Shown: positions 2,045 to 64,000 of the stretch, in pieces
Position numbering within the stretch: the stretch's first letter is position 1
How the letters are laid out: each line of letters begins with the position of its first letter
From: Octopus sinensis
Lineage: Eukaryota
Reading direction: 5' to 3'
DNA length: 64,000 nucleotides
NCBI RefSeq assembly: GCF_006345805.1
Contig: NC_043023.1
Span: 10,788,001-10,852,000, forward strand
Notes under the pieces: generated by a model
What the model saw: only the letters and a program-made list of their open reading frames with translations
What the model was told of the DNA's origin: nothing
Database searches by the model: none
Made by a program: the position numbers and the translations under genes

Positions 2045-2652
2045 GTTTCTCTTTCGTTTCAGATTATCAGATGACATCTGCTTCACAGGATTTTTACATA
2101 AGCAGCGTCATTAGAATGGAAAGTCTTTTGAAGACTGAGCAAAGATGTTATACAAAACACGTATAACCCTGTTTCTATGAATATTTACTGAATTACTGCA
2201 AAATATATCTGCTGAACTGATATATGTAACAAAATTTCTCTTCTTTATTGTCTGGAGTACACAGAAAATTGTATTTGTATTTTGATTAATCATTTGGCAT
2301 TTCAACTGGCCGTATCAGTCCCAAACGTTCAAACTATTTTGTGTTAAAACTGCCCACATCTGGCCTCTTAGTCTCACCCTACAATGTCATTCTAAACATA
2401 AGGAATCACATCATTGAAATCTTAAAGCAATACGATAATGAATGATTAATTTGGAAGAATTTGGAGAGATAACCATTATATGATAGAGTAATCTGAATGT
2501 TAATGAGTTAAAGCAATTAAAAAGGCAGTTTGCAGCATCTTCAGATATTAACAAAGAACACTTTTGATGAAGATATATCAGTAGAAATATTTAAGAGCAA
2601 TATACGAGAAGAAGGAAAACCTTTGTGTACTGTGACAAGAGAAAGGAAAATT
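2045..2652 (+). promoter_or_regulatory. Splice acceptor (tttcag|2063) and long non-coding leader of ZNF gene 1, interrupted by a MITE-like insert (~2300-2516)
   Basis: Polypyrimidine tract plus AG at 2061-2062; homologous to the leaders at 20548, 42293, 61339 and 52552(-). Confidence 0.6.
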
Positions 2653-3768
2653 ATGGAAAAGGAATTATGTAGGAGTGAAGATCAATATGAAAGAGAGTCT
2701 GAAGAAATTGATGTTTCTGATGATGTTGAGAATGAAAAGAGCAAAGCATCATTTGAGTGTGATATCTGTGGTAAATCATTCTCTCAGAAAGCTGACTTAG
2801 TCTTTCACCAACGTGTTCATACAGGAGAGAAGCCATATCATTGCGATATCTGTGGTAAATCGTTCACTCGAAAAGATTACTTGATTAATCACCAACATAT
2901 TCATACAGGAGAGAGGCCGTATCGCTGTGATATCTGTGGTAAACCATTCTCACAAGGTTGTAACTTAACAAGACACAAACAGATTCACACAAAAGGAAAA
3001 TATTTACAGTGTGATGTCTGTGGTAAATCATTTTTTGATACTCATCATTTAACCACTCACAAACGCATTCATACACAAGAAAAACCATATCGCTGTGATA
3101 TCTGTGGTAAATCATTCTATGAAAATAGTTACCTAACTACTCACTTGCGCATTCATACAGGAGAGAAGCCATATCACTGTGATTTCTGCGGGAAATCATT
3201 TTCTTACAGACACACATTAACTATTCACAAAAACATTCATACAGGTGAGAAGCCATATCATTGTGATATCTGTGGTAAATCATTCTCACAAAATTATCAC
3301 TTGACTAGGCACAAACGTACACATACAGGAGAAAAGCCATATCACTGTGATATCTGTGGTAAATCATTTCCTGGAACTAGTGATGTAACTATTCACAAGC
3401 GTGTTCATACAGGAGAGAAGCCATATCCTTGTGATATCTGTGGTGAGTCATTCTCTAGAAGTGGTGTCTTAATTAGTCACAAACGTATTCATACAGGTGA
3501 GAAACCATATCATTGTGACATTTGTGGTAAATCGTTCTCTCAAAATAATCACTTGACTCGTCACAAACGTATTCATACAGGGGAGAAGCCATATCACTGT
3601 GATATCTGTGGTAAATCATTCCCTGAAAATGGTGACTTAACTAGTCACAAACATATTCATACAGGAGAGAAACCTTTTCAGTGTGACATCTGTGATAAAT
3701 CTTTCACTCGAAATTATCTCTTGACTAGGCACAAACACATTCATACAGGACAAGTCATATCACCTTAA
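2653..3768 (+). CDS. C2H2 zinc-finger protein (gene 1), 12 tandem fingers with a short acidic N-terminus
   Basis: ORF 2530-3768 with 12 CxxC...HxxxH units and TGEKPY linkers. ATG 2653 was chosen because its context (gaaaggaaaattATGgaa) matches genes 3 and 5. The stop codon is the TAA of the MITE TTAA. Confidence 0.92.
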
Positions 3769-8880: not shown

Positions 8881-9289
8881 AAACAAAAACAAAACGAATA
8901 ATTTTAGACACACAGAATATTGAAAACAAAAGACACCGCTTGTGTGACAGTGATACTCATTTACAACTATGATGCAAGGAGACACATAAGACAAACAATT
9001 AGGATAATATTGACAAATTCCAATAAAAAGTATACTCTAAATCTTTATTATAGGCATATAGCCTGGACGAAGAGTAGACATAACAAGGACAGACACAACA
9101 CCACAGTGGGGACAATAAACATAAAATGAATGAGGATGAATATTATATAAAAATGGAAAATGAAATGGCTGCATGGGTCCCACTCCTCATGCAGTACCAT
9201 TTGAACGTTTGTACACACTATATTACAATCGGGATATTTCACAATGATAAAGTCATAAAGTCACTTTGCCGATTCACTACATTGTGAAT

Positions 9290-9445
9290 GGCAAAACAAA
9301 AGTCCTGTGCAAAATATTCCCCAATCGCTATTACATACAAAAAGACATCCCACACATATTGCAGTGGAAGGGTTTTGTCATCTGTGGGTATTCTATGAGT
9401 ATGATTAAATCATTGTCAGACACAAAAGTTTCCCCACATTTTTCA
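9290..9445 (-). pseudogene. Decayed zinc fingers distal to the satellite (tail of the gene 2 array)
   Basis: Minus strand reads aaactattccactg..tgtggggaaacttttgtgtctgacaatgattta...aaacccttccactgcaatatgtgtgggatgtcttt, i.e. KLFH..CGETFVSDNDL...KPFHCNMCGMSF with indels. Confidence 0.75.
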
Positions 9446-12400
9446 GTGGAATAGTTTTTTCCTTTAACTGTTTTCTTAATTCACTGTTAAATACAAAGAC
9501 AATCCATTCATGACACACTGGAATAGTTTTTTTCTTTAACTGTTTTCTTAATTCACTGTTAAATACAAAGACAATCCATTCATGACACACTGGAATAGTT
9601 TTTCTCCAATACTTTCCTTTAACTGTTTTCTTAATTCACTGTTGAATACAAAGACAATCCATCCATGTCACAGTGGAATAGTTTTTTCTTTAACTGTTTT
9701 CTTAATTCACTGTTAAATACAAAGACAATCCATTGATGACACACAGGAATAGTTTTTCTCCAGTACTTTCCTTTAACTGTTTTCTTAATTCACTGTTAAG
9801 TACAAAGACAATCCATTCATGACACACTGGAATAGTTTTTCTCCAGTACTTCCTTTAACTGTTTCCTTAATTCACTGTTAAATACAAAGACAATCCATCC
9901 ATGTCACAGTGGAATAGTTTTTTCTTTAACTGTTTTCTTAATTCACTGTTAAATACAAAGACAATCCATTGATGACACACAGGAATAGTTTTTCTCCAGT
10001 ACTTTCCTTTAACTGTTTTCTTAATTCACTGTTAAGTACAAAGACAATCCATTCATGACACACTGGAATAGTTTTTCTCCAATACTTTCCTTTAACTGTT
10101 TTCTTAATTCACTGTTAAATACAAAGACAATCCATTCATGACACACTGGAATAGTTTTTCTCCAGTACTTTCCTTTAACTGTTTCCTTAATTCACTGTTA
10201 AATACAAAGACAATCCATCCATGTCACAGTGGAATAGTTTTTTCTTTAACTGTTTTCTTAATTCACTGTTAAATACAAAGACAATCCATTGATGACACAC
10301 GGGAATAGTTTTTCTCCAGTACTTTCCTTTAACTGTTTTCTTAATTCACTGTTAAATACAAAGACAATCCATCCATGTCACAGTGGAATAGTTTTTTCTT
10401 TAACTGTTTTCTTAATTCACTGTTAAATACAAAGACAATCCATTCATGACACACTGGAATAGTTTTTCTCCAATACTTTCCTTTAACTGTTTTCTTAATT
10501 CACTGTTAAATACAAAGACAATCCATCCATGTCACAGTGGAATAGTTTTTTCTTTAACTGTTTTCTTAATTCACTGTTAAATACAAAGACAATCCATTCA
10601 TGACACACTGGAATAGTTTTTCTCCAGTACTTTCCTTTAACTGTTTCCTTAATTCACTGTTAAATACAAAGACAATCCATCCATGTCACAGTGGAATAGT
10701 TTTTTCTTTAACTGTTTTCTTAATTCACTGTTAAATACAAAGACAATCCATTGATGACACACGGGAATAGTTTTTCTCCAGTACTTTCCTTTAACTGTTT
10801 TCTTAATTCACTGTAAATACAAAGACAATCCATCCATGTCACAGTGGAATAGTTTTTTCTTTAACTGTTTTCTTAATTCACTGTTAAATACAAAGACAAT
10901 CCATTCATGACACACTGGAATAGTTTTTCTCCAGTACTTTCCTTTAACTGTTTCCTTAATTCACTGTTAAATACAAAGACAATCCATCCATGTCACAGTG
11001 GAATAGTTTTTTCTTTAACTGTTTTCTTAATTCACTGTTAAATACAAAGACAATCCATTCATGACACACGGGAATAGTTTTTTCTTTAACTGTTTTCTTA
11101 ATTCACTGTTAAATACAAAGACAATCCATTCATGACACACTGGAATAGTTTTTTCTCCATACTTTCCTTTAACTGTTTTCTTAATTCACTGTTGAATACA
11201 AAGACAATCCATCCATGTCACAGTGGAATAGTTTTTTCTTTAACTGTTTTCTTAATTCACTGTTAAATACAAGACAATCCATTGATGACACACAGGAATA
11301 GTTTTTCTCCAGTACTTTCCTTTAACTGTTTTCTTAATTCACTGTTAAGTACAAAGACAATCCATTCATGACACACTGGAATAGTTTTTCTCCAGTACTT
11401 TCCTTTAACTGTTTCCTTAATTCACTGTTAATACAAAGACAATCCATCCATGTCACAGTGGAATAGTTTTTTCTTTAACTGTTTTCTTAATTCACTGTTA
11501 AATACAAAGACAATCCATTCATGACACACGGGAATAGTTTTTCTCCAGTACTTTCCTTTAACTGTTTTCTTAATTCACTGTAAATACAAAGACAATCCAT
11601 TCATGACACACTGGAATAGTTTTTCTCCAATACTTTCCTTTAACTGTTTTCTTAATTCACTGTTAAATACAAAGACAATCCATTCATGACACACTGGAAT
11701 AGTTTTTCTCCAGTACTTTCCTTTAACTGTTTCCTTAATTCACTGTTAAATACAAAGACAATCCATCCATGTCACAGTGGAATAGTTTTTTCTTTAACTG
11801 TTTTCTTAATTCACTGTTAAATACAAAGACAATCCATTCATGACACACGGGAATAGTTTTTCTCCAGTACTTTCCTTTAACTGTTTCCTTAATTCACTGT
11901 TAAATACAAAGACAATCCATCCATGTCACAGTGGAATAGTTTTTTCTTTAACTGTTTTCTTAATTCACTGTTAATTAAATACAAGACAATCCATTGATGA
12001 CACACGGGAATAGTTTTTCTCCAGTACTTTCCTTTAACTGTTTTCTTAATTCACTGTTAAATACAAAGACAATCCATTGATGACACACGGGAATAGTTTT
12101 TCTCCAATACTTTCCTTTAACTGTTTTCTTAATTCACTGTTAAATACAAAGACAATCCATTGATGACACACGGGAATAGTTTTTCTCCAGTACTTTCCTT
12201 TAACTGTTTTCTTAATTCACTGTTAAATACAAAGACAATCCATTGATGACACACGGGAATAGTTTTTCTCCAGTACTTTCCTTTAACTGTTTCCTTAATT
12301 CACTGTTAAATACAAAGACAATCCATCCATGTCACAGTGGAATAGTTTTTTCTTTAACTGTTTTCTTAATTCACTGTTAAATACAAAGACAATCCATTGA

Positions 12401-13056
12401 TGACACACGGGAATAGTTTTTCTCCAGTACTTTCCTTTAACTGTTTTCTTAATTCACTGTTAAATACAAAGACAATCCATTGATGACACACGGGAATAGT
12501 TTTTCTCCAGTACTTTCCTTTAACTGTTTTCTTAATTCACTGTTAAATACAAAGACAATCCATTGATGACACACGGGAATAGTTTTTCTCCAATACTTTC
12601 CTTTAACTGTTTTCTTAATTCACTGTTAAATACAAAGACAATCCATCCATGTCACAGTGGAATAGTTTTTTCTTTAACTGTTTTCTTAATTCACTGTTAA
12701 ATACAAAGACAATCCATTGATGACACACAGGAATAGTTTTTCTCCAGTACTTTCCTTTAACTGTTTTCTTAATTCACTGTTAAGTACAAAGACAATCCAT
12801 TCATGACACACTGGAATAGTTTTTCTCCAGCACTTTCCTTTAACTGTTTTCTTAATTCACTCTTAAATACAAAGACAATCCATTCATGTCACAGTGGAGT
12901 AGTTTTTTTCTCCAGTACTTTCCTTTAACTGTTTTCTTAATTCACTGTTAAATACAAAGACAATCCATTCATGACACACTGGAATAGTTTTTCTCCAATA
13001 CTTTTCTTTAACTGTTTTCTTAATTCACTGTTAGATACAAAGACACTCCATTCATG
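9443..13056 (-). repeat. Zinc-finger-derived tandem satellite, ~46 units of 83 bp and 71 bp
   Basis: 46 occurrences of the gacaatccat core counted by eye. The minus-strand unit aligns to the last finger of gene 2; the short unit lacks 12 bp of the linker. Confidence 0.92.
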
Positions 13057-14646
13057 TCATACTGGAATAGTTTTGCCTCCAGCATGTTTCTTGATGTGTT
13101 TTGTTAAATCACTGTTAGATACAAACGACAGCCCACACAAGTCACAGTGAAAGGGTTTCTCTCCTGTATGAATGCGTTTGTGTATTACAAGGTAAGAATT
13201 TTCACGAAACGATTTCCCACAAGTTTGGCAGTGAAAAGGTTTTTCCCCGGTATGAATCCTCCTATGCGATTTCAAGTGACCGTTAGTAACAAACGATTTG
13301 TCACATACCTCGCACTGAAATCGTTTTTCACCTGTATGCGTCCTTCGGTGAACCGAGAGACTAGAGTTATCGCAGAACGACTTTCCACATATCTCGCAAC
13401 GATACGGTTTTTCCCCAGTATGAATTCGGTTGTGTTTCGTCAATGTACTTTTTATCATAAAAGATTTCCCGCATGTCTCGCACGGATACGGTTTTTCCCC
13501 GCTGTGTATCCGGCTGTGCCTCTTTAAATCACAGTTCGTAACAAACGACTTCTCACATATCCCACAACGGAATCGTTTATCTCCAGAATGAATTCTCTGA
13601 TGAACTACAAATCCAGAATGATCAGAGAATGATTTACCACATATTTCACATTCGTAAGGCTTTTCCCCCGTATGAACCCTAATGTGTTTTTTCAAATTAC
13701 TCTTAGAAACAAAACCCTTCCCACATATTTCACAGCCGTATATTTTCTCCCCAGAGTGAATTCTTCGGTGGCGTAAAAGATGAGAATAATCACAGAAAGA
13801 TTTTCCGCAGATTTCGCAACGATACGGTTTTTCCCCCGTGTGGACTCTACCGTGACGCTTCAAATCACTATTAAAGACAAAAGACTTCTCACACACTTCA
13901 CAGCGGAATATTTTCTCCCCCGTATGAATCCTCCGATGAACAACAAGAGTAGAATTATCAGAGAATGATTTCCCGCACACATCACAATGATACGGTCGTT
14001 CCCCAGTATGAGTCCGCTTGTGAGATGTCAAACTGCTGTTACAGACAAAAGACTTTCCGCAGATTTCACAGTGAAACAGTTTTTCTCCAGAGTGTATTCG
14101 TTGGTGAACTACAAGAGTAGATTTATCAGAGAATGACTTCTTACATATGTCACACTCATAAGGTTTTTCTCCCGTATGAGTTCGTTTATGTGCTGTTAAA
14201 TTACTATTACAGACAAAACACTTACCACACGTTTCACAGTGAAATAAATTCTTTCCAGTATGAATTCTTTGGTGACGAAGGAGGCTAGACTTTTCAAAGA
14301 ATGATTTACCACAAATTTCACAGTGAAAGGGTTTTTCTCCACCGTGTACCCTCTTGTGCTTTGTTAATTTACTGTTAGAGACAAAATCTTTCCCACAAAT
14401 CTCACACTGATAAGAGTTTTCGGTCAATTCCCCATTATGAATTTCTTTATATGTAAACGATTCATCTTCAGAAAATATTTTCTGGTAAATTTCACTGCAA
14501 TATCCAGGAATATTTCTCTCTAACGATGATTGTTCAATAATTGTTTCCCTGCGTAAAGGCTTCTCATCGCTCTGTGTTTGTGTTACTGAATTAACAGAGT
14601 TAAAAACAGTCGAGTTAAAAGTGTCCAAGTGATTAACGTCTTCCAT
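13057..14646 (-). CDS. C2H2 zinc-finger protein (gene 2), 16 fingers plus one degenerate N-terminal finger
   Basis: 529-aa ORF with an MEDVNHLDT N-terminus paralogous to gene 4. It ends by a +1 shift in the linker (GGKTIPV*). Confidence 0.93.
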   Translation of the reverse strand: MEDVNHLDTFNSTVFNSVNSVTQTQSDEKPLRRETIIEQSSLERNIPGYCSEIYQKIFSEDESFTYKEIHNGELTENSYQCEICGKDFVSNSKLTKHKRVHGGEKPFHCEICGKSFFEKSSLLRHQRIHTGKNLFHCETCGKCFVCNSNLTAHKRTHTGEKPYECDICKKSFSDKSTLVVHQRIHSGEKLFHCEICGKSFVCNSSLTSHKRTHTGERPYHCDVCGKSFSDNSTLVVHRRIHTGEKIFRCEVCEKSFVFNSDLKRHGRVHTGEKPYRCEICGKSFCDYSHLLRHRRIHSGEKIYGCEICGKGFVSKSNLKKHIRVHTGEKPYECEICGKSFSDHSGFVVHQRIHSGDKRFRCGICEKSFVTNCDLKRHSRIHSGEKPYPCETCGKSFMIKSTLTKHNRIHTGEKPYRCEICGKSFCDNSSLSVHRRTHTGEKRFQCEVCDKSFVTNGHLKSHRRIHTGEKPFHCQTCGKSFRENSYLVIHKRIHTGEKPFHCDLCGLSFVSNSDLTKHIKKHAGGKTIPV

Positions 14647-14694: not shown

Positions 14695-15156
14695 GGTATC
14701 GTCTCTTGTCTTGGATATCACGAGGATCTATTTACATGAGTGGAAATACGAAATGAAAATATAGTTTCGACTTACAGAAATTCTTTAAAAAAGCCTACGA
14801 GTTTTACTGGTACTACTTGAGAACAGTGGTCCCGGTGCGCGCACTTGCGTACTCGCGCTAAGTCGATCCTTACTTTGTGCTTTTGTGTTATTTACTTTGT
14901 TTAAAAAATTATTAACTTTGTGCTTTTGTGTTATTTACTTTGTTTAAAAAATTATTAACTTTGTGCTTTTGTGCTTTATTTACTTTGTTTAACAAAAATT
15001 ATTTACTTTGTGTAAAAAGTTATATATTTTCTGTTTTATTTACTTTGTTTTAAAAAGGTATCGTCTCTTACAGTTTAGTCTCTTGTCTTGGATATCACGA
15101 GGATCTGTTTACATGAGTGGAAATACGAAATGAAAATATAGTTTCGACTTACAGAG
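14695..15156. repeat. ~80-bp direct repeat (14695-14778 and ~15078-15156) flanking a GG-terminal CG-rich element end (14809) and T-rich repeats
   Basis: gtctcttgtcttggatatcacgaggatct.tttacatgagtggaaatacgaaatgaaaatatagtttcgacttacaga occurs twice and includes a minus-strand gtaagt donor-like site. Confidence 0.8.
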
Positions 15157-15344: not shown

Positions 15345-15912
15345 TGTTGGCAGAAACGTTAGCACGCCGGGCGAAATGCTTAGCCGTATTTCGTCTGCCG
15401 TTACGTTCTGAGTTCAAATTCCACCGAGGTCGACTTTGCCTTTCATCCTTTCGGGGGCGATTAAATAAGTACCAGTTACGCACTAGGGTTAATGTAATCG
15501 ACTTAATCCGTTTGTTTGTCCTCTCTGTGTCTAGCCCCTTGTGGGTAGTAAAGAAATAGGTATTTCGTCTGAGTTCAAATTCCGCCGAGGTCGACTTTGC
15601 CTTTCATCCTTACGGAGTCAATTAAATAAGTACCAGTTATGCACTGGGGTCGATGTAATCGACTTTATCCGTTTGTCTGTCCATGTTTGTCCTCTCTGTG
15701 TTTAGCCCCTTGTGGGTAGTAAAGAAATAGGTATTTCGTCTGCCGTTAGGTTCTGAGTTCAAATTCCGCCGAGGTCGACTTTGCCTTTCATCCTTTCGGG
15801 GTCGATGAAATAAGTACCAGTTATGCACTGGAGTCGATGTAATCGACTTAATCCCTTCGTCTGTCCTTGTTTGTTCCCTCTGTGTTTAGCCCCTTGTGAG
15901 CAATAAAGAAAT
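15345..15912 (+). mobile_element. tRNA-headed SINE (family A) with ~4 tandem body modules
   Basis: Head tggcagaaacgttagcacgccgggcgaaatgcttagc, then repeats of gttcaaattccgccgaggtcgactttgcctttcatcctttcggggtcgat..taagtaccag. The central block resembles the MetaSINE-type core (from memory). Confidence 0.8.
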
Positions 15913-16139
15913 ATATATGTTAAAAAGTGAGCAATGTGTTCTGTTGTGGTAATCCAAATAATATTTGCTGTTTCCTTTTCGAAAGTCAACGGAAAAGGGA
16001 AGAAAAATTAGGAAAAACTATTCGTTCATTTGTGACTGATTAAACCCCTTATTTGTCCTGGCCCCTTAAAATAGGGGACAACTAATTAAGAATGTATTTT
16101 CAGGATGAAAGGAAATGATAGACCACGAACTGGATGGAG

Positions 16140-17167: not shown

Positions 17168-18164
17168 ACCTATTTCTTTACTACCCACAAGGGGCTAAAC
17201 ACAGAGTGGACAAACAAGGACAGACACACGGATTAAGACGATTATATCGACTCCATTGCGTAACTGGTACTTATTTAATCGACCCCGAAAGGATGAAAGG
17301 CAAAGCCGACCTCGGCAGAATAATTAAAACCGATCTCTGACAAGCAACATTTAAAAGGTGTTCAATTCCCAATGTACACTTTAATTTTGACGTCTATATC
17401 TAGCACGTTGACCGTCCACTTTTAGTGGTCAGTCCTTTAAATTTTGTATGTAAAAATATTTTAATCTTCGGATTTTTTTAATATGCTAGGCCACTGGTTT
17501 TAATTGATTAATATCAATTTCTACCCTTATTAAATTTTATATATATATATATTTATATATATACCAAGTAAGTTAGGGGTTGTGAATCCAACCCACTAAG
17601 GGATAATACTTATCCAATATACCGCTGGTATAATACCCAATTATTAATACACTAGTGTTTTTAATTGCAATGCAATTAACTTATTGTATTAAATGGGTGA
17701 AGGTAAAGAAATATTTTACCATTAATTTATATTACAAATAAGAAAATGGAGAAACACATTAGTTGGTTTATCAGCTTTAGGATATTAGAATGTTGGTATT
17801 TCGTCTGCCGTTATGTTCTGAGTTCAAATTCCGCCGAGGTCGACTTTACCTTTCATCCTTTCGGGGTCGATAAATTAAGTACCAGTTACACACTGGGGTC
17901 GATATAATCGACTTTATCCGTTTGTCTGTCCTTGTTTGTCCCCTCTGTGTTTAGCCCCTTGTGGGTAGTAAAGATATAGGTATTTCGTCTGTCTTTATGT
18001 TCTGAGTTCAAATTCCGCCGAGTTCGACTTCGCCTTTCATCCTTTCGGGGTCGATTAAATAAGTACCAGTTACGCACTAGGGTTGATATAATCGACTTAA
18101 TCCATTTGTCTGTCCTTGTTTGTCCTCTCTGTGTTTAGCCCCTTGTGGGTAATAAAGAAATAGA
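17168..18164. mobile_element. SINE family A copies in opposite orientations (17168-17320 minus; 17795-18164 plus, two bodies)
   Basis: Same body motif as 15345-15912. Confidence 0.75.
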
Positions 18165-18359
18165 TATTAGAATGTTGTCTTATTTATTTATTTAACAAAA
18201 CGAGAACCATAATAACATACATATATACAATTTAAAATTCAATACATATAAGATAAGAATACAAGTAGTTATTAAAAAACATGACTATATAAAAAAAAAA
18301 CATATATATTAGAGATAATATATAGATATCTAGTAGCGTATTTACAGATAAATTAATTA

Positions 18360-28989: not shown

Positions 28990-29480
28990 TCTTTTATATT
29001 TTTATTTCTTTATTGCCCACAAGGGGCTAAACAGATTAAGTCAATTATATCGACCCCAATGAGTAACTGGTACTTAATTTATTGACCCCGAAAGGATGAA
29101 AGGCAAAGTCGACCTCGGCGAAATTTGAACTCAGAACGTAGTGGCAGACGAAATACCTATTTTTTTACTACCCACAAGGGGCTAAACAAGGACAGACAAA
29201 CGGATTAAGTCGATTATATCGACCCCAGTGTGTAACTTGTACTTAATTTATCGACCCCGATAGGATGAAAAGCAAAGTCGACCTTGGTGGAATTTGAACT
29301 CAGAACATAATGGCAGAAGAAATATCTATTTCTTTACTGCCCACAAGGGGCTAAACACAGAGGGGACAAACAAGGACAGACAAACGGATTAAGTCGATTA
29401 CATCAACCCCAGTACGCAACTGGTACTTAATTTATCGACCCCGAAAGGATGAAAGGCAAAGTCGACCTTGGCAGAATTTG
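28990..29480 (-). mobile_element. SINE family A tandem bodies (3)
   Basis: Repeated gaccccgaaaggatgaaaggcaaagtcgacc. Confidence 0.75.
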
Positions 29481-29653
29481 AACGATTAGCCAAAAGTGCC
29501 ACACAGTAGGACTGAACCTGATATCTGATGGTTGGGAAGCAAGCTTGTTAACCATACAGCTGTCAGTTTCCTTGCATTGATTCATTAAGGCCCATCTTTC
29601 CTTTTTATTTCTGGTTGCAATGTTTTCAACAAACCCTGTCACTACTTCCCTCC

Positions 29654-32745: not shown

Positions 32746-34588
32746 TCAGACAGCCTCTACCGAAGTGTCACAGTTATAAGGCTTAGCCTCTTCCAAAGTT
32801 TCACAGTTTGAAGGTTTAGCCTCTTCCAAAGTTTCACAATTTGACGGTTTAGCCTCTACCAAAGTTTCACAGTTTAAAGGCTTAGCCTCTACCAAAGTTT
32901 CACATTTTGAAGGCTTTGCCTCTACCAAAGTTCCACAGTTAAAAGGCTTAGCTTCTACCACAGTTTCAGAGTTAAAAGGCTTAGCCTCTACTGAAGTTCC
33001 ATAGTTAAAAGCCTTAGCCTTTACTGAAGTTTTATAGTTAAAAGGCTTAGGTTCTACCACAGTTTCAGAGTTAAAAGCCTTAGCTTCTACCGAAGTTCCA
33101 CAGTTAAAAGCCTTAGCTTCTACCGAAGTTCCACAGTTAAAAAGCTTAGCATCTACCGAAGTGTCACGGTTAAAAGCCTTAGCCTCTACCGAAGTTTCAT
33201 GGTTAAAAGGCTCAGGTTCTGCCGAAGTTCCATAGATAAAAGGCTTAGCTTCTACCGAAGTTTCATGCTTAAAAGGCTCAGGTTCTGCTGAAGTTCCATA
33301 GATAAAAGCCTTAGCTTCTACCGAAGTTTCATGCTTAAAAGGCTCAGGTTCTGCTGAAGTTCCATAGATAAAAGCCTTAGCTTCTGCCGAAGTGTCATGG
33401 TTAAAAGGTTTAGCTTCTACCACAGTTTTAAAGTTGAAAGCTTTCTCTTTAGCGTGTGTTTGTCTGTGTCTGTTTAGATTACTATTATCAACAAAAGATT
33501 TCCCGCACACTTCACAGTGATACGGTTTCAATCCCGAATGGCTACGAGTGTGAATAACAAGGCAAGAATTCTGAGTAAAGGATTTCCCACAGATGTCACA
33601 GTGGTATGGTTTCTCCCCCGTGTGGATTCGTCTGTGTCTGATTAAATCGCTGTTAGTACCAAACGCTTTCGCACACACTTCACAATGGAAGTTCTTTTCT
33701 CCAGTATGAATTCGTTTGTGTTTCGTCAAGACATTATTAGAGACAAAAGACTTCCAACAGATTTCACAGGGAAACAGTTTCTCTCCAGTGTGACTCCGTT
33801 TGTGGATCGTAACCTTAGAATTAGTAATGAATGCTTTTCCGCAGATTTCACAGGCAAACGGTTCTCTCCGGAATGGATCCGTTCGTGAATGACAAGATTA
33901 GCATGATCAAGAAGGTTTTCTCACAGATTTCACACTGAAAAAGCTTGGCATCCGTGTGGATCCGTTTATGTCTGTTTAAAACACTACTACAGATGAAAGA
34001 TTCACCGCACGTTTCGCAATGGTACGGTCTTTCGCCCGTATGAATCCGCTTGTGTCTGGTTAATTTACAATTTGAGACGAAAGACTTGAAGCAGATTTCA
34101 CAATGATACGGTTTTTCCCCCGTGTGGATTCGCCTATGTTTTGTTAAATTGCTGTTGGAAACAAAGGATTTATCACATATCTCACAGCGAAATAGTTTCT
34201 CCCCCGTATGGCTACGTATGTGGATAACAAGGTGAGAATTCTGAGTGAAGGATTTTTCACATATCTCGCAATGATACGGCTTTTCCCCTGTATGGATTCG
34301 TTGATGACTTATAAAATAACTGTTATATGCAAAATATTTCCCACATATTTCACAATGGAATGGTTTGTCCTTATTGTGTGCGTCTTTATGCGTGAAGAAA
34401 TCCTGTTCAGAATCGAAGGTTTTCCCACAAATCTCACAGCAATATTTTGGAATAGTTCCAATTATCGATGCTTGATTAATAAATAGTTCACTCCATAAAG
34501 GTTTCTCGTCTCTCTCTATCGATGTTGCTGAATCTACATCGGTAAAATCAGTTGTGGTAGAAGTGTCCAAGTCCTTAACGTCTTCCAT
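32746..34588 (-). CDS. C2H2 zinc-finger protein (gene 4), 12 fingers plus C-terminal 11-aa repeat domain; two apparent 1-bp deletions in this sequence
   Basis: ORFs 33848-34588 and 32746-33729 join into one finger array if one base is restored near 33910 (ttc tt gat) and one near 33862 (gag aa ccg). N-terminus is paralogous to gene 2. Confidence 0.8.
32749..33447 (-). repeat. Coding 33-bp minisatellite (~21 x EAKPFNCETSV-like)
   Basis: In-frame repeats with no stop; includes a 22-aa higher-order dimer ([22 protein letters not shown]) x3. Confidence 0.92.
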
Positions 34589-34771
34589 ATCAATTCTTCA
34601 GGAATCTGAGACAAAAATCTGAGAAATGTTTTAAAGAATTATTTCTTACGGTTTAGCTTTTTGTCGAGAATATTATCTGTTTCGGTTTACAAGTGTGGAA
34701 ATTATGCAATGTATATTTTTTTTTTCCAAATTCCACACATATATTTTTGTTACATTTTCTACATTATCATT

Positions 34772-35599: not shown

Positions 35600-36397
35600 T
35601 ACACACATAAATATATATTTCTTTGTTGCCCACAAGGGGCTAAACGTAGAGGGGACAAACAAGGACAGACAGACGGATTAAGTCGATTACATCGACCCTA
35701 GTGCGTAACTGGTACTTAATTTATCGACCCCGAAAGGATGAAAGGCAAAGTCGACCTCGACGGAATTTGAACTCGGAACGTAACGGCAGACGAAATACAT
35801 ATATATATATATTTCTTTACTACCCTCAAGGGGCTAAACATAGAGGGGACAAACAAACGGATTATGTCTATTACATCGACCTCAGTGCGCAACTGGTACT
35901 TAATTTATCGACCCGAAAGGATGAAAGGCAAAGTCGACCTCGGCGGAATTTGAACTCGGAACGTAACGGCAGACGAAATACATATATATATATATTTCTT
36001 TACTGCCCACAAGGGGCTAAACACAGAGGGGACAAATAAGGACAGACAGACGGATTAAGTTGATTGTATCGACTCCAGTGCATAACTGGTACTTAATTTA
36101 TTGACCCCGAAAGGATGAAAGGCAAAGTCGACCTCGGCGGAATTTGAACTCAGAACGTAGCGGCAGACGAAATACCTATTTCTTTATTACCCACAAGGGG
36201 CTAAACACAGAGGGGACAAACAAACGGATTAAGTCTATTACATCGACCCCAGTGCGTAACTGGTACTTAATTTATCGACCCCGAAATGATGAAAGGCAAA
36301 GTCGACCTCAGCGGAATTTGAACCCAGAACGTAACGGCAGACGAAATACGGCTAAGCATTTCGCCCGGCGTGCTAACGTTTCTGCCAGCTCGCCGCC
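35600..36397 (-). mobile_element. SINE family A with one head and ~4 tandem bodies
   Basis: Head at 36345-36397; bodies repeat toward lower coordinates. Confidence 0.8.
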
Positions 36398-36704
36398 TTA
36401 CACACATAAATATAGGCATACCTACACATAAGTGCCCTACACCCAACAGCCAATTTTTTTTTTTTTTTCCACATTAAATCCCCACTTAATCGTAAATATA
36501 ATCGTAATCTACAAACTCCGAAAGTCTTCTGTACAGAAGTTTAGAAATAGCAGAAGTTTAGAAATAGCAGAAGTTTAGAAATAGCAGCCAGAAAGCTTAG
36601 AAATAGCTATTTCCTCTACTTTAAAAAGAGATTCTCGGACAAAAACAAATTACTCGAAAACAATCCACGCAGGCAGAGAGGAAGAATAACGAAAATCAAT
36701 ATAT

Positions 36705-36773
36705 ATATTATAGATAGAACGGGTGTACTATATATATATATATATATATATATTATAGATAGAACGGGTGTAC

Positions 36774-36805
<32 letters not shown>

Positions 36806-37111
36806 TATAGATAGAACGAGTGTACTATATATATATATATCTATACAATATGTTAATATATATATTTATATATTATAGATAGAACGGGTGTATAATATAT
36901 ATATATATATATTATAGGTAGAACGGGTGTATAATATTATATATATATTATAGCTAGAACGGGTGTATAATATATATATATATATATTATAGCTAGAACG
37001 GGTGTATAATATATATATTATAGATAGAACGGATGTATAATATATATATATATATATAATATATATAGTATAGATAGAGCGGGTGTATAATATATATAAT
37101 AGATAGAACGG

Positions 37112-37151
<40 letters not shown>

Positions 37152-37545
37152 TAGATAGAACAGGTATATTATATATATATATTATAGATAGAACGGGTGT
37201 ATAATATATATATATATATATTATAGATAGAACGGGTATATTATATATATATATATATATAGTATAGATAGAACTGGTGTATAATATATATATATATTAA
37301 AGATAGAACGGGTATATTATATATATATATATATATAAGTATAGATAGAACGGGTGTATAATATATATATATATATTATAGCTAGAACGGGTGTATAATA
37401 TATATATATATATAGTATAGATAGAACGGGTGTATAATATATATATATTATAGCTAGAACGGGTGTATAATATATATATATATATAGTATAGATAGAACG
37501 GGTGTATAATATATATATAGTATAGCTAGAACGGGTGTATAATAT

Positions 37546-37579
<34 letters not shown>

Positions 37580-37590
37580 ATATATATATA
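36705..37590. repeat. Compound minisatellite: ~21 copies of TATAGATAGAACGGGTGTATA separated by variable (TA)n
   Basis: Cores counted by eye; the spacers are pure TA runs. Confidence 0.9.
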
Positions 37591-47245: not shown

Positions 47246-48290
47246 ATCAGTTACACACTGGGGTCGATGTAATCGACTTAATACCTTTGTCTGTCCCCTC
47301 TGTGTGTAGACCCTTGTGGGCAGTAAAGAAATAGGTATTTCATTTGTCTTCGTGTTTTGAGTGCAAGTGCAATGGGGTTGACTTTGCCTTTCATCCTTTC
47401 GGAATCAATAGATTAAGTACCTATTTCTTTACTACCCACAAAGGGCTAAACACAGAGAGGACAAACGGATTAAGTTGAGTATATCAACCCTAGTGCTTAA
47501 CTGGTACTTATTTAATCGACCCCGAAAGGATGAAAGGCAAAGTTGACCTCGGCGGAATTTGAACTCAGAATGTAAAGACAGACGAAATACCTATTTCTTT
47601 ACTACCCACAAGGGGCTAAACACAGAAGGGACAAACGGATTAAATCGATTACATCCACCCCGGTGCGTAACTGGTACTTATTTAATCGACCTCAAAAGGA
47701 TGAAAGGCAAAGTTGACCTCGGCGGAATTTGAACTCAGAACATAAAGACAGACGAAATACCTATATCTTTACTACCCACAAGGGGCTAAACACAGAGAGG
47801 ACAAACAGATTAAATCGATTACATCGACCCCGGTGCGTAACTGGTACTTATTTAATCGACCCCGAAAGGATGAAAGGCAAAGTTGACCTCGGCGGAATTT
47901 GAACTCAGAATGTAGTAGCAGATGAAATATCACTAAGCATTTTGCCCGGCGTGCTAACGTTTCTGCCAGCTCACCATGGAGTCAATAAATTAAGTACCAG
48001 TTACAAACTGGGATCGATGTAATCAACCTAATCCCTTCCCCCAAATGTTAGGCCTTGTGCTTCCAGTACAAAGTATTATAAGGCAGCAAGCTGGCAGAAT
48101 TGTTAGCTTGCCAGGCTAAATGCTTGGCAGCGTTTCATCTCTCTTTATGTTCTGAGTTCAAATTCTGCCAAGGTTAACTTTGTCCTTTCATCCTTTCAGG
48201 GTCAATAAAATAAATACCAGTTAAGTACTGGGGTTGATGTAATCAACTAGCCCCTTCCCCCCGAAAATGGCTGGTCTTGTGCCAGATTTG
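47246..48290. mobile_element. SINE family A cluster with adjacent inverted copies
   Basis: Plus body 47250-47420, three minus bodies plus head to ~47975, then a plus copy 48080-48290. Confidence 0.75.
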
Positions 48291-48305
48291 AAAGCAAGAC
48301 ATTTG

Positions 48306-50061
48306 GGATCTTTTCCTTTTGAAGGCCAGATTTCAACATAATTTCTAGTTAACTAAACACTTTTAAACTTTGTATACTGGGAGAACGTGTCAAAATAAAA
48401 CATTTTTCGGATCCTTTCCTTTTGAACGGCAGTTTTCAACACAATTTCTAGTTAACTAAACACTTTTAAACTTTGTATACTGGGAGAACGTGTCAAAATA
48501 AAACATTTTTCGGATCTTTTCCTTTTGAACGGCAGTTTTCAACATAATTTCTAGTTAACTAAACACTTTTAAACTTTGTATACTGGGAGAACGTGTCAAA
48601 ATAAAACATTTTTCGGACCTTTTCCTTTTGAACGGCAGATGTCAACACAATTTCTACTTAACTAAACACTTTTAAACTTCGTATACTGGTAGAATGTGTC
48701 AAAATAAAACATTTTTTGGATCTTTTCCTTTTGAACGGCAGTTTTCAACATAATTTCTAGTTAACTAAACACTTTTAAACTTTGTATACTGGGAGAACGT
48801 GTCAAAATAAAACATTTTTCGGATCTTTTCCTTTTGAACGGCAGTTTTCAACATAATTTCTAGTTAACTAAACACTTTTAAACTTTGTATACTGGGAGAA
48901 CGTGTCAAAATAAAACATTTTTCGGATCTTTTCCTTTTGAACGGCAGTTTTCAACATAATTTCTAGTTAACTAAACACTTTTAAACTTTGTATACTGGGA
49001 GAACGTGTCAAAATAAAACATTTTTCGGATCTTTTCCTTTTGAACGGCAGTTTTCAACATAATTTCTAGTTAACTAAACACTTTTAAACTTGTATACTGG
49101 GAGAACGTGTCAAAATAAAACATTTTTCGGATCTTTTCCTTTTGAACGGCAGTTTTCAACATAATTTCTAGTTAACTAAACACTTTTAAACTTTGTATAC
49201 TGGGAGAACGTGTCAAAATAAAACATTTTTCGGATCTTTTCCTTTTGAACGGCAGTTTTCAACATAATTTCTAGTTAACTAAACACTTTTAAACTTTGTA
49301 TACTGGGAGAACGTGTCAAAAAAAACATTTTTCGGATCTTTTCCTTTTGAACGGCAGTTTTCAACATAATTTCTAGTTAACTAACACTTTTAAACTTTGT
49401 ATACTGGAGAACGTGTCAAAATAAAACATTTTTCGGATCTTTTCCTTTTGAACGGCAGTTTTCAACATAATTTCTAGTTAACTAAACATTTTTAAACTTC
49501 GTATACTGGTAGGATGTGTCAAAATAAAACATTTTTTTTCTCTTGGCTTTCTTGAGAAAATTGTAATTTGTTAGTTTAACGTAGTTTAATTTTTCGAATT
49601 GTAACCAATCCTATGCTCTCTTTTCAGCTAAAATCATTTGCTGCATCTAAAACTGAGACAACATCCTGTCACTAACCCTAAACCTCCCCCCTAACCCTAA
49701 ATTTTTTTTTCTTAATTGTTAAATTAATTTAATTGTTATGAGTGTAAAAAAAACTAAAGCAATGGAATTAAATTAATTTAACAATTAAGAAAAAAAAATT
49801 TAGGGTTAGGGTTAGTGAGAGGATGTTGTCTCAGTTTTAGACGCAGCAAATGATTTTAGTTGAATGGAGGTAATCGATTGGTTAAAATTGCCAAAATGCT
49901 CGGATTTTCAGATGAAATATCTTACAAATTATAGAATTTTCTCAATAAAACCAAGAGAAAAAAATGTTTTATTTTGACACATTCTACCAGTATACGAAGT
50001 TTATAAGTGTTTAGTTAACTAGAAATTGTGTTACAAAGTGCCGTTCAAAAGGAAAAGATCC
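48306..50061. mobile_element. Merlin-like MITE whose left ~103-bp end is tandemly amplified 12 times
   Basis: TIR starts at 48306, 48409, 48512, 48615, 48718, 48821, 48924, 49027, 49129, 49232, 49334 and 49435; a single right TIR ends at 50061; flanks gacatttg / aacatttg. Confidence 0.9.
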
Positions 50062-50279: not shown

Positions 50280-50995
50280 AATTGTAACTGTGATACCAGT
50301 GTCGGTGGCACGTAAAAGAAACCATCCGAACATGGCCGTAGCTAGCGCTGCATCGACTGGCCTCCGTGCTGCTGGCATGTAACAAACATCATCCGATCGT
50401 GACTGTTGCCAGCCTTGCCTAGCCTCTGTGCCTGTGGCACGTAAAAGGCACCATCCGATCATGGCAGTTGCCAGCCTAGCCTGGCCTCTGTGCCGGTGGC
50501 ACATAAAAAGCACCATCCAAGCGTGGCCGTTCGTCAGCCTCATCTGGCCTCTGTGCCAGTGGCACGTAAAAAGCACCATCCGATCATGGCCATTTGCCAG
50601 CCTAGCCTAGCCTCTGTGCCGGTGGCACGTAAAAAGCACCAGTCAAGCGTGGCCGTTCGTCAGCCTCGTCTGGCCTCTGTGCCAGTGGCACGTAAAAAGC
50701 ACCATCCGATCGTGGCCGTTTGCCAGCCTAGTCCAGCCTCTGTGCCGGTGGCACGTAAAAAGCACCATCCAAGCGTGGCCATTCGCCAGCCTCGTCGGGC
50801 ACCTGTGCCGGTAGAACGTAAAAAGCACCCACTACACTCACGGGAGTGGTTGGTGTTAGGAAGGGCATCCAGCTGTAGAAACACTGCCAGAACTGACTGG
50901 GCCTGGTGCAGCCTTCGGGCTTCCCAGACCCCAGTCGAACCGTCCAAGCCATGCTAGAATGGAAAGCGGACGTTAAACAATGATGATGATGAAAC
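50280..50995 (-). mobile_element. RTE-tail repeat with ~9 internal 59-bp tandem units
   Basis: Repeated ggcacgtaaaaagcaccatccgatcgtggccgtttgccagcc..gcctctgtgcc.gt. Confidence 0.75.
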
Positions 50996-52699: not shown

Positions 52700-53740
52700 A
52701 TACCTATTTCTTTATTACCCACAAGGGGCTAAACATAGAGGGAACAAACAAGGACAGACATAGGTATTAAGTCGATTACATCGACCTCAGTGCGTAACTG
52801 GTACTTGTTTAATCGACCCCGAAAGGATGAAAGGTAAAGTCGACCTCGGCGGAATTTGAACTCACAACGTAACAGCAGACGAAATACCTATTTCTTTACT
52901 ACCCACAAGGGGCTAAACACAGAGAGGACAAACAAGGACAGACAGATGGATAAAGTCGATTATATCGACCCCAGTGCGTAACTGGTACTTAATTTATCGA
53001 CCCCGAAAGGATGAAAGGCAAAGTTGACCTCGGCGGAATTTGAACTCACAACGTAACGGCAGACAAAATACCCGGCGTGCTAACGTTTCTGCCAGCTCAC
53101 CGACTGGTCAGCAAACAGGAGTGAATTACCCCACGCTAGTTAAAATGAAACTTTTGGGAATAATGAGGCCTCGACGACTGGCACCCACGCCAACTTCCTT
53201 TCATTGGACACTAAACTCTGCTTGCGAAAACCTGTTGGGCAAGTGAAATCGAAATTGAACCAAAATTCGATGACTGGCACCCGTGCCAGTGGAGCACTAA
53301 CAGCTCCATCTGAGCGGGATCACTGTCAGAGTGGCTGTCTGGCTTCCGTGCTGGTGGGCACATAAAAAGCACCATTTGAGCGTGATCGTTACCAGCATCA
53401 CCTTACTGGCACTTGTGCCAGTGGTACGTGAACAAAACATTCGAGCGAGGTCGTTGCCAGTGCCGCTGGACTGACTCCTGTGCAGGTGGCACGTAAAAAA
53501 CACCATTTCAAGCGTGGCCATTGCCAGTACCGCCAGACTGGCCCTCGTGTTGGTGGCATGTAAAAGCACCCACTACACTCTCAGAGTGATTGGTGTTAGG
53601 AAGGGCATCCAGCTGTAGAAACTCTGCCAGATCAAGACTGGAGCCTGGCGCAGCCATCTGATTTGCCAGTCCTCAGTCAAATCGTCCAACCCATGCTAGC
53701 ATGGAAAGCGGATGTTAAACGATGATGATGATGATGATAT
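52700..53740 (-). mobile_element. SINE family A (2 bodies, 52700-53100) and RTE-tail repeat (53190-53740)
   Basis: Family motifs as above. Confidence 0.75.
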
Positions 53741-62956: not shown

Positions 62957-63310
62957 GTGGCAAGCTGGCAGAATCGTTAGCACGCCGGGCGAAATGCTTA
63001 GCGGTATTTCGTCTGCTGTTATGTTGTGAGTTCAAATTCCGCTGAGGTGGACTTTGCCTTTCATCCTTTCGGGGGTCGATAAATTAAGTACCAGTTACGC
63101 ACTGGGGTCGATGTAATCAACTTAATCCCTTTGTCTGGCCTTATTTGTCCCTTCTGTGTTTAGCCCCGTGGTTGTAGTAAAAAATAGGTATTTCGTCTGC
63201 TGTTACATACCAGTTACGCACTGGGGTCGATATAATCAACTTAATCCATTTGTCTGTCCTTGTTTGTCCTCTCTGTGTTTAGCCCATTATGGGTAGTAAA
63301 GAAATAAGTA
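62957..63310 (+). mobile_element. SINE family A with partly duplicated body
   Basis: Head ggcaagctggcagaatcgttagcacgccgggcgaaatgcttagc. Confidence 0.8.
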
Positions 63311-64000
63311 TTACCTTGTATATAACAATGAATGCATTTACACATGAAAGAAGATATGACAGCATGTGAGAACAACCTCCTAACCACAATTATGTATATA
63401 CAAATGCTGGGATTATTCATCATAGAGGATGGCCATTAAGGGGTCAAATCTGTATGGTCTAGTGGTCTTGGCACTAAAAAAATAGGAGTTCTCTCTTTGC
63501 CAGCGTTATATATCAAGTGCAGAGTACACTGAATAACCAGCTGGGGGTAAAATAGCAATATCGTTCATTCCTAGGGGACGTCTGTGTTTAGGTAGTTTTT
63601 TCAAGACTTATACACACCCTGATACCATCGATATCTACATATCAAATTTGAGCGCAATCGGATGGAAGATGCCCAAGATCCTAGAAGACGCACAAACAGA
63701 ACGGATTTTATATAATATATGAGATCTCATGCAAATACCCTATTAACCCATTCGTTACTATATTTCTGACCAAAATACACCCCTCGTGAGTTTCAATTAA
63801 ATTCTAAAATAATCATGAATCTAGGCTTGTTACATTAAATAACTATAATTTTTTTTACTTATCAACATATTAATGTGATATTTAGAACATAATTAAAGAA
63901 TGGGTTTTTAATCAATTCTATTGCATAACTTTTGTCTCAAAGTGACTTTAATTACAGGTAAATTGAGCAAAAGGTAAAAATGTTAAAATTTTGTTTAAAC

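Follow-up and report, generated by a model that had tools for sequence, protein, structure and literature searches.

A 3.6-kb tandem array behind a zinc-finger gene of Octopus sinensis: a non-coding minisatellite with a probable origin in one dead finger unit

Introduction

How does a run of finger-like units come to lie directly behind the stop codon of a zinc-finger gene, and what is it now? The question was raised by a 64,000-nucleotide stretch of the Octopus sinensis genome (G000:C27:10788001-10852000; RefSeq contig NC_043023.1), which is referred to below as the window. It belongs to an assembly of 2.72 Gb in 13,516 contigs and holds six poly-C2H2 zinc-finger (ZNF) genes together with numerous tandem and SINE-like (short interspersed nuclear element-like) repeats. 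One of these genes, gene 2 on the minus strand, is followed by a tandem array that an earlier note, made from the sequence letters by a model, had described as a satellite born from a single finger unit. The analysis reported here was carried out to follow up that note. The array was found to be non-coding and confined to one locus, and it is very probably a minisatellite born from one dead zinc-finger unit.

Results

Monomers and coding capacity: Monomers were delimited by anchoring on a conserved 14-mer. This gave 47 in-register units, namely finger 16 of gene 2 (the last intact finger) and 46 array monomers, all in the same orientation and spaced by 70-86 bp. The distance from finger 16 to the first monomer (m01) is exactly 84 bp; afterwards it is 83 or 71 bp, with a few deviations of ±1-3 bp. 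The array comprises 30 monomers of ~83 bp and 16 of ~71 bp, which lack 12 bases in the helix-end/linker part of the long form. The earlier note had described both the short variant and a long unit one base short of a finger; the missing base is a 1-bp deletion (TCG TTT to TC TTT) that is present in 46/46 monomers.

Of the four zinc ligands every monomer retains Cys1 alone, with Cys2 replaced by Asn (AAT), His1 by Gln (CAG) and His2 by Ser (AGT). The C-x2-C-x12-H-x3-H pattern of a coding C2H2 array is not kept, and there is no open frame with an 84-bp period. All six reading frames of the array are closed, the longest stop-to-stop segment being 56 amino acids (aa). Coding by way of the 237-bp period (79 codons) was considered separately and ruled out by stops in all frames. 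The array is non-coding.

Relationship to finger 16: The 83-bp consensus matched finger 16 at 66/83 positions, fingers 1-15 at 45-58 and 2,000 shuffled sequences at 45.0±3.2 (maximum 56). The alignment of unit and finger proposed in the earlier note was thus reproduced well above the level of shuffled sequence, and the finger-16 string quoted there is found exactly at 13146. The 83-mer quoted as the repeat unit is a consensus, derived from one long subtype, and not an actual copy; no monomer is identical to it, and the nearest (10145..10063) is 1 base off. When the consensus was compared by BLASTN with the window after masking of the array, the best match was again finger 16 (77.6 % over 107 bp, E value 1.8e-17); other gene 2 fingers reached 5e-5 at best and other ZNF genes matched over ~30 nt of linker only.

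Finger 16 is no more than 68 % identical to any other gene 2 finger, the closest pair of coding fingers reaching 76 %, and finger 16 and the founder of the repeat are therefore mutual nearest relatives. G-L-S-F is common to both, the other 15 fingers having G-K-S/D/C/G-F in its place, and so is the ACTATTCCAG linker. The monomer at the gene-side edge is intermediate: m01 still has TCT and AAGAAA as in finger 16, and its identity to the core of the array is 91.4 %, as compared with 76.4 % for finger 16 itself, so that m01 forms a step in a gradient that leads from finger 16 to the core (94.7 %). In the alignment the finger-16 states that survive depend on the monomer subtype: one long type has kept GAC, the short type AAGAAA. 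The short type corresponds to an m01-like long monomer minus 12 bases. Judged by these alignments, the array descends from a finger-16-like unit.

Gene 2 and the end of its reading frame: The gene 2 protein consists of an 80-aa family-specific N-terminus and 16 intact C2H2 fingers at a strict 84-bp period (Pfam zf-C2H2, E value 1.7e-92). A search of the own genome found the N-terminus as a family module at the head of at least 86 paralogous open reading frames (ORFs), with a best identity of 58 %. Exact look-up of the 529-aa protein in a large protein collection gave no match, and its N-terminal region had no matches in such a collection; a homology search with the whole protein returned just generic vertebrate poly-ZNF proteins (≤55 % identity) and no orthologue. 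In the region 230-370 bp upstream of the ATG, presumably promoter or 5′ region, a 43-bp repeat of 3.2 copies and 94 % identity was observed (window 14872-15012).

The gene 2 frame ends because the linker of finger 16 has one A more than the linker of the array, which shifts the frame into the stop. The TGA occupies bases 3-5 of m01, and the array does begin at the stop codon, as had been claimed. If the extra A is assumed to be a sequencing error, the frame still stops, at a TAA within the first monomer.

The far side: Translation beyond the last monomer gives EKCGETFVSDNDLIILIEYPQMTKPFHCNMCGMSFCM followed by two stops, that is, one decayed finger, beginning where that monomer ends, and one truncated finger, both in register; the earlier note had reported decayed fingers here. 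The decayed finger agrees with the repeat unit at 49/73 positions and is not specifically related to it, and the flank on this side of the array is unique in the genome. In six of the eight paralogs surveyed the protein likewise breaks off within a truncated finger, a few residues after its start (HTREKPSKCKI-stop and HIGRNLINCET-stop are examples), so that the far side has the appearance of the original C-terminus with its stop. The extent of 9290-13146 given earlier has to be narrowed accordingly: the array is real, and the array proper covers 13061..9435, the remainder being finger 16, decayed unique finger sequence (9434..9328) and plain flank (9327..9290). Neither AATAAA nor ATTAAA occurs within the array. 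If the first canonical AATAAA past the stop (Table 1) is used, the array would plausibly lie inside a putative 3′ untranslated region (3′UTR) of ~4.0 kb, of which 3.6 kb is array.

Higher-order structure: Tandem Repeats Finder reported a single array (9458/9684..13130) with periods of 83, 154 and 237 bp and 85-89 % matches. Mean pairwise identity between monomers is 94.7 %, and 28/45 sequences are distinct. Identity is higher at the even lags 2, 4 and 6 (95.4-95.8 %) than at the odd lags 1, 3 and 5 (93.5-94.4 %). In nearly every case a 71-bp unit is followed by an 83-mer of the GACATGG type, which yields a 154-bp dimer. Of the three domains (Table 1) the central one contains the longest exact internal repeat, which measures 263 bp and has an offset of 462 (3 x 154). 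A variant monomer marked by ACTTAAC plus CCTG occurs four times, among other sites at 12810..12728 and 11375..11294. The recurring diagnostic blocks named in the earlier note were located exactly, ACACAGG at 9741, 9977, 11290 and 12725 and GTTAAGT at 9795, 10031, 11344 and 12779. A higher-order repeat is present in that the multimer period is better conserved than the monomer and the monomer types are ordered; it takes the form of a mosaic of registers and not of one uniform higher-order repeat. In theory (Smith 1976), a mosaic of this sort is to be expected from repeated unequal exchange in several registers.

Occurrence in the genome: The whole assembly was searched with a three-monomer query of 249 bp (at least 21 matches) and with a 47-mer at ≤3 mismatches (at least 41 matches). 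These counts are lower bounds for the assembled sequence, unassembled sequence and heterochromatin being outside the scope of the search. All matches fell within the array, and since every genome-wide match is inside it, the array is a private single-locus minisatellite within the 2.72-Gb assembly and not a satellite family. It has the make-up of a minisatellite, with head-to-tail 83/71-bp units over 3,627 bp at one locus. The term 'satellite' used earlier was overstated for one 3.6-kb locus with no other copy; an occurrence of the repeat in many places away from ZNF genes, named as a possible objection, was not seen.

Finger amplification in coding form: In the tails of eight paralogs (~4.5 kb each) no comparable non-coding finger array was found. 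A paralogous ZNF ORF of 556 aa (L065:1658-3328; G000:C28:4226657-4228327, minus strand) has four near-identical intact fingers in a row, which represent a recent in-frame amplification of a single finger. The same four linkers at 84-bp spacing were seen on an unplaced contig (C13379:21435-21711), which may be an allelic copy. A ZNF gene of the CDIC type (L068; G000:C30:12009800-12014700) has a coding finger array with a four-finger periodicity of 336 bp at 84-87 % identity (~2388-3560 in gene orientation), which points to recent duplication of a multi-finger block. The four-finger run of the C28 paralog and the 336-bp periodicity thus provide the coding counterpart, in this genome, of the same amplification process, and the in-register finger amplification suggested by the earlier note is of the kind seen in the C28 paralog.

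Table 1. Positions of the array, of its flanks and of the SINE-like units (window coordinates unless a locus is named).
Feature	Position	Strand	Remarks
ZNF gene 2 ORF	14646..13057	(-)	529 aa; ATG 14646, stop TGA 13059..13057
Finger 16 + linker (84 bp)	13146..13063	(-)	last intact finger; closest relative of repeat unit
Tandem array	9435..13061	(-)	3,627 bp; 46 head-to-tail monomers, 30 of ~83 bp and 16 of ~71 bp
First monomer (m01)	12979..13061	(-)	holds gene 2 stop; intermediate between finger 16 and core
Proximal domain	11931..12727	(-)	blocks of 71 + 83 (GACATGG type) + 2-3 x 83 (CATCAATGG type), ~320-400 bp; CCCG unit ends
Central domain	10146..11139	(-)	nearly pure 154-bp dimers (71 + 83)
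Distal domain	9590..10145	(-)	237/320-bp blocks with recurring variant monomer (ACTTAAC plus CCTG)
Decayed finger (EKCGETFVSDNDLIILIEYPQMTKPFH)	9364..9434	(-)	array register; both His ligands lost
Truncated finger start (CNMCGMSFCM), then TAA TAG (9333..9328)	9328..9363	(-)	probable ancestral C-terminus and stop, by analogy with paralogs
First canonical AATAAA past stop	9044..9049	(-)	gene strand; position observed, use putative
SINE-like unit sites	15405-15913, 17795-18168, 29029-29483, 35663-36349, 47418-47929, 52700-53072, 63089-63312; L067:3093-3813		

Discussion

Proposed course of events: The array appears to have expanded within former coding sequence. In its ancestral state the ORF would have started at 14646, and behind finger 16 it would have continued through a sister copy of that finger, one further finger and a tail formed by a truncated finger until it reached the TAA at 9333; its poly(A) signal would have been the one at 9049. 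Premature termination would have followed from a frameshift in the linker of finger 16, from the 1-bp deletion of the sister finger, or from both, and selection would no longer have acted on the fingers beyond. Before amplification the dead sister finger had presumably already been left with a single zinc ligand out of four, and it may then have been multiplied by in-register misalignment between 84-bp neighbours, as in the finger-number change of coding arrays, either through unequal exchange between sister chromatids or homologues or through replication slippage, and free of any reading-frame constraint. The 71-bp variant would have arisen by a 12-bp deletion from an early m01-like monomer, and unequal exchange in registers of 154, 237 and ~320 bp would have built the higher-order mosaic and homogenised the copies to ~95 %. 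We infer this order of events, and unequal exchange as the mechanism, from the present arrangement; the array itself is probably a neutral by-product.

Expansion while still coding: Finger-16-like fingers might instead have been amplified as coding units, with the frameshift and the other lesions spread later by concerted evolution. The C28 paralog with its four intact near-identical fingers shows that such a coding stage exists, and homogenisation is clearly active in the array. However, four independent disabling changes are fixed in 46/46 copies, including m01 at the least homogenised edge, and an extra zinc ligand is retained in no copy. Spreading each lesion by conversion needs more steps than amplifying one founder that was already dead, and we regard an expansion in the coding state as unlikely.

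A functional RNA element: The array could also act as RNA, either as a regulatory repeat in the 3′UTR of gene 2 or as the precursor of antisense small RNAs (PIWI-interacting or small interfering RNAs) directed against ZNF genes through its finger and linker homology, the latter having been raised in the earlier note. It is probably placed behind the stop codon and ahead of the first AATAAA, its sense strand is purine-rich (59 % A+G) and could bear repeated protein-binding motifs, and a 25-mer of the linker has ~30 matches at two mismatches in other ZNF genes genome-wide. At 0-1 mismatch, however, the matches of this 25-mer in the genome are all within the array, and exact identity to the other five ZNF genes of the window does not reach 18 nt; the maximum between the array and all remaining sequence of the window is 17 nt, in a match to finger 16. 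No inverted repeats of ≥16 nt were found in the array, no Rfam family was matched, and predicted folding was not above that of shuffled sequence on either strand (z -0.52 and -0.23). Neither extended complementarity to a target nor a route to antisense or double-stranded RNA was thus apparent, and the idea of small RNAs against the ZNF family found no support in the sequence. Indels and variant monomers build up freely along the array, and the tails of the eight paralogs lack anything comparable, hence it is no family-level feature. A role as a functional RNA element is very unlikely.

Mis-assembly: Long-read assemblies are error-prone at tandem arrays, and a single assembly was examined here, so the array or most of its copies might be an artefact, such as the mis-assembly or over-expansion of a short repeat. 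For Octopus sinensis an assembly from PacBio plus Hi-C data has been reported (PMC12564688). The window holds no N, however, and both junctions of the array lie in the finger register with unique flanks. Distinct sequences in 28/45 monomers, the structured domains and a longest exact internal repeat of 263 bp do not have the look of a stutter of identical copies. An artefact is hardly to be expected on these grounds.

Foreign origin: That a transposon-borne repeat or a pre-existing satellite was inserted by the gene and resembles a finger incidentally can practically be dismissed, in spite of the wealth of further tandem arrays and SINE-like repeats in the window, as this origin is effectively refuted by the exact 84-bp register at both junctions, by the single locus (no second copy in the genome assembly) and by the relationship to finger 16, the adjacent finger being the best relative and the edge copy standing between finger and core.

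Points of weakness: Several points weigh against birth of the array from one dead finger as set out above. Death before amplification is deduced from shared lesions, which concerted evolution could have spread later. The searches yielded no orthologous locus or close paralog against which the events could be dated or polarised; the best paralogous N-terminus, at 58 %, is too distant for reconstruction of the ancestral seventeenth finger. Copy number and integrity of the array depend on one assembly, inclusion in the 3′UTR is deduced solely from the lack of AATAAA and ATTAAA in the array, and neutrality is a default assumption and not a result.

Comparison with known systems: The zinc-finger array of PRDM9 is a coding minisatellite of 84-bp units. 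There, as here, tandem finger units behave as a minisatellite, with in-register unequal exchange or conversion altering both sequence and copy number and leaving highly similar neighbouring units. The PRDM9 repeats differ in being in frame, under selection and in possession of all zinc ligands; the present array has 83/71-bp units with three of four ligands lost, lies past the stop codon, and comprises 46 copies arranged in higher-order blocks. Minisatellites and satellites are reportedly born by unequal crossover in unconstrained sequence, as in the model of Smith (1976) and in satellitome studies of 'seed' arrays. A short local duplication free of selection grows and homogenises, with diverged edges and higher-order periodicities, and the octopus array conforms to this; it is set apart in that its seed can be traced precisely to a specific protein-coding repeat unit between two preserved ancestral flanks, which is rarely possible.

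A third comparison is offered by MMSAT4 of the mouse (Kauzlaric et al. 2017, PMC5363842), a so-called satellite with three C2H2 fingers as its consensus. It too is zinc-finger-derived sequence within ZNF clusters that has been classed as tandem-repeat or satellite DNA. It occurs, however, at 715 sites, most of which are related units or belong to genuine KZFP genes as their coding finger arrays, so that the label is a mis-annotation (PMC5363842), whereas the present array is found at a single locus, originated from one finger and is truly non-coding. In a literature search PRDM9 and MMSAT4 were the nearest precedents, and no paper was found in which a single dead finger had seeded a non-coding array. 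What is known of finger arrays and of tandem duplications free of constraint nevertheless leads directly to such a phenomenon.

Neighbouring Arrays and Repeats

An in-frame array behind another ZNF gene: A second ZNF gene of the window (34597..32746, minus strand) with an N-terminus of the same family has 6 + 5 intact fingers, with frameshifts in finger 7 (~33930-33860). Directly after its last finger it carries an in-frame array of 33-bp units in 21 copies (33453..32760), which encodes 11-aa repeats. At 81 % identity its copies show 0 % indels, none of the 21 interrupts the reading frame, and the array ends with SVEAV and a stop at 32748-32746. A paralog ~240 kb away (L070:1-271; G000:C27:11037800-11038070) has the same in-frame 33-bp/11-aa repeat at the end of a 529-aa ORF, and its terminal residues before the stop (KPYNCETSVEAV) are the same as well. 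As the period is a multiple of 3, indels are absent, the frame is open throughout and the repeat is conserved in a second gene, the 33-bp tail is probably a coding, conserved C-terminal module of the subfamily. KPFNCETS in the unit is reminiscent of a linker and the beginning of a finger, yet the similarity to finger DNA was not significant (20/33 versus 18.1±1.1 for shuffles), and an origin from it is no more than suggestive.

Gene 2 and the gene with the 33-bp array belong to one ZNF subfamily, and in both an array follows directly on the last intact finger; the outcome at this position is different, in frame in one case and non-coding in the other. Both subfamily genes of the window (2/2) have an array after the last intact finger, non-coding with 46 copies of the 83-bp type and in frame with 21 copies of 33 bp. 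It is conceivable, and in our view rather doubtful, that tandem arrays are born time and again at the 3′ ends of this cephalopod-type ZNF subfamily.

Other repeats: The SINE-like unit of ~170-184 bp is found in both orientations, in 2-4 tandem copies at each site and with 82-91 % identity (Table 1). ARAGORN detected no transfer RNA in the window. The most homogeneous array of the window, at 48302-49536, consists of 12 copies of a 103-bp unit with 96 % identity and no indels, and it is unrelated to fingers. A GC-rich tandem unit of 63/126 bp (beginning GTGCCGGTGGCACGTAAAAAGCACCATCC) was seen at 50299-50829 and 53348-53565 and also at L070:1355-1569, and probably belongs to a dispersed element as its internal repeat. 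At 36699-37590 there is a TA-rich compound array of ~0.9 kb with periods of 39 and 72 bp, composed of (TA)n and a ATAGATAGAACGGGTGT core.

Conclusions

By itself the locus shows no new mechanism or function; it is a clean but ordinary case. Its value lies in what has been kept. The origins of satellites and minisatellites are usually untraceable because seed and flanks have been lost. Here the gene side preserves an intact sister finger and the far side a decayed finger together with the old stop and a poly(A) signal, and the lesions of the founder are visible. The locus is thus a tidy teaching and model case for the birth of an array by unequal exchange after loss of the reading-frame constraint, and the array is likely to be a hypervariable marker in the ZNF cluster. 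If the 3′ ends of the subfamily were indeed recurrent birthplaces of arrays, and if many finger-seeded arrays at different stages existed, the locus would become a dated, flank-anchored model of how coding repeats turn into minisatellites or satellites, and some of the arrays might serve as recruited 3′UTR or C-terminal modules.

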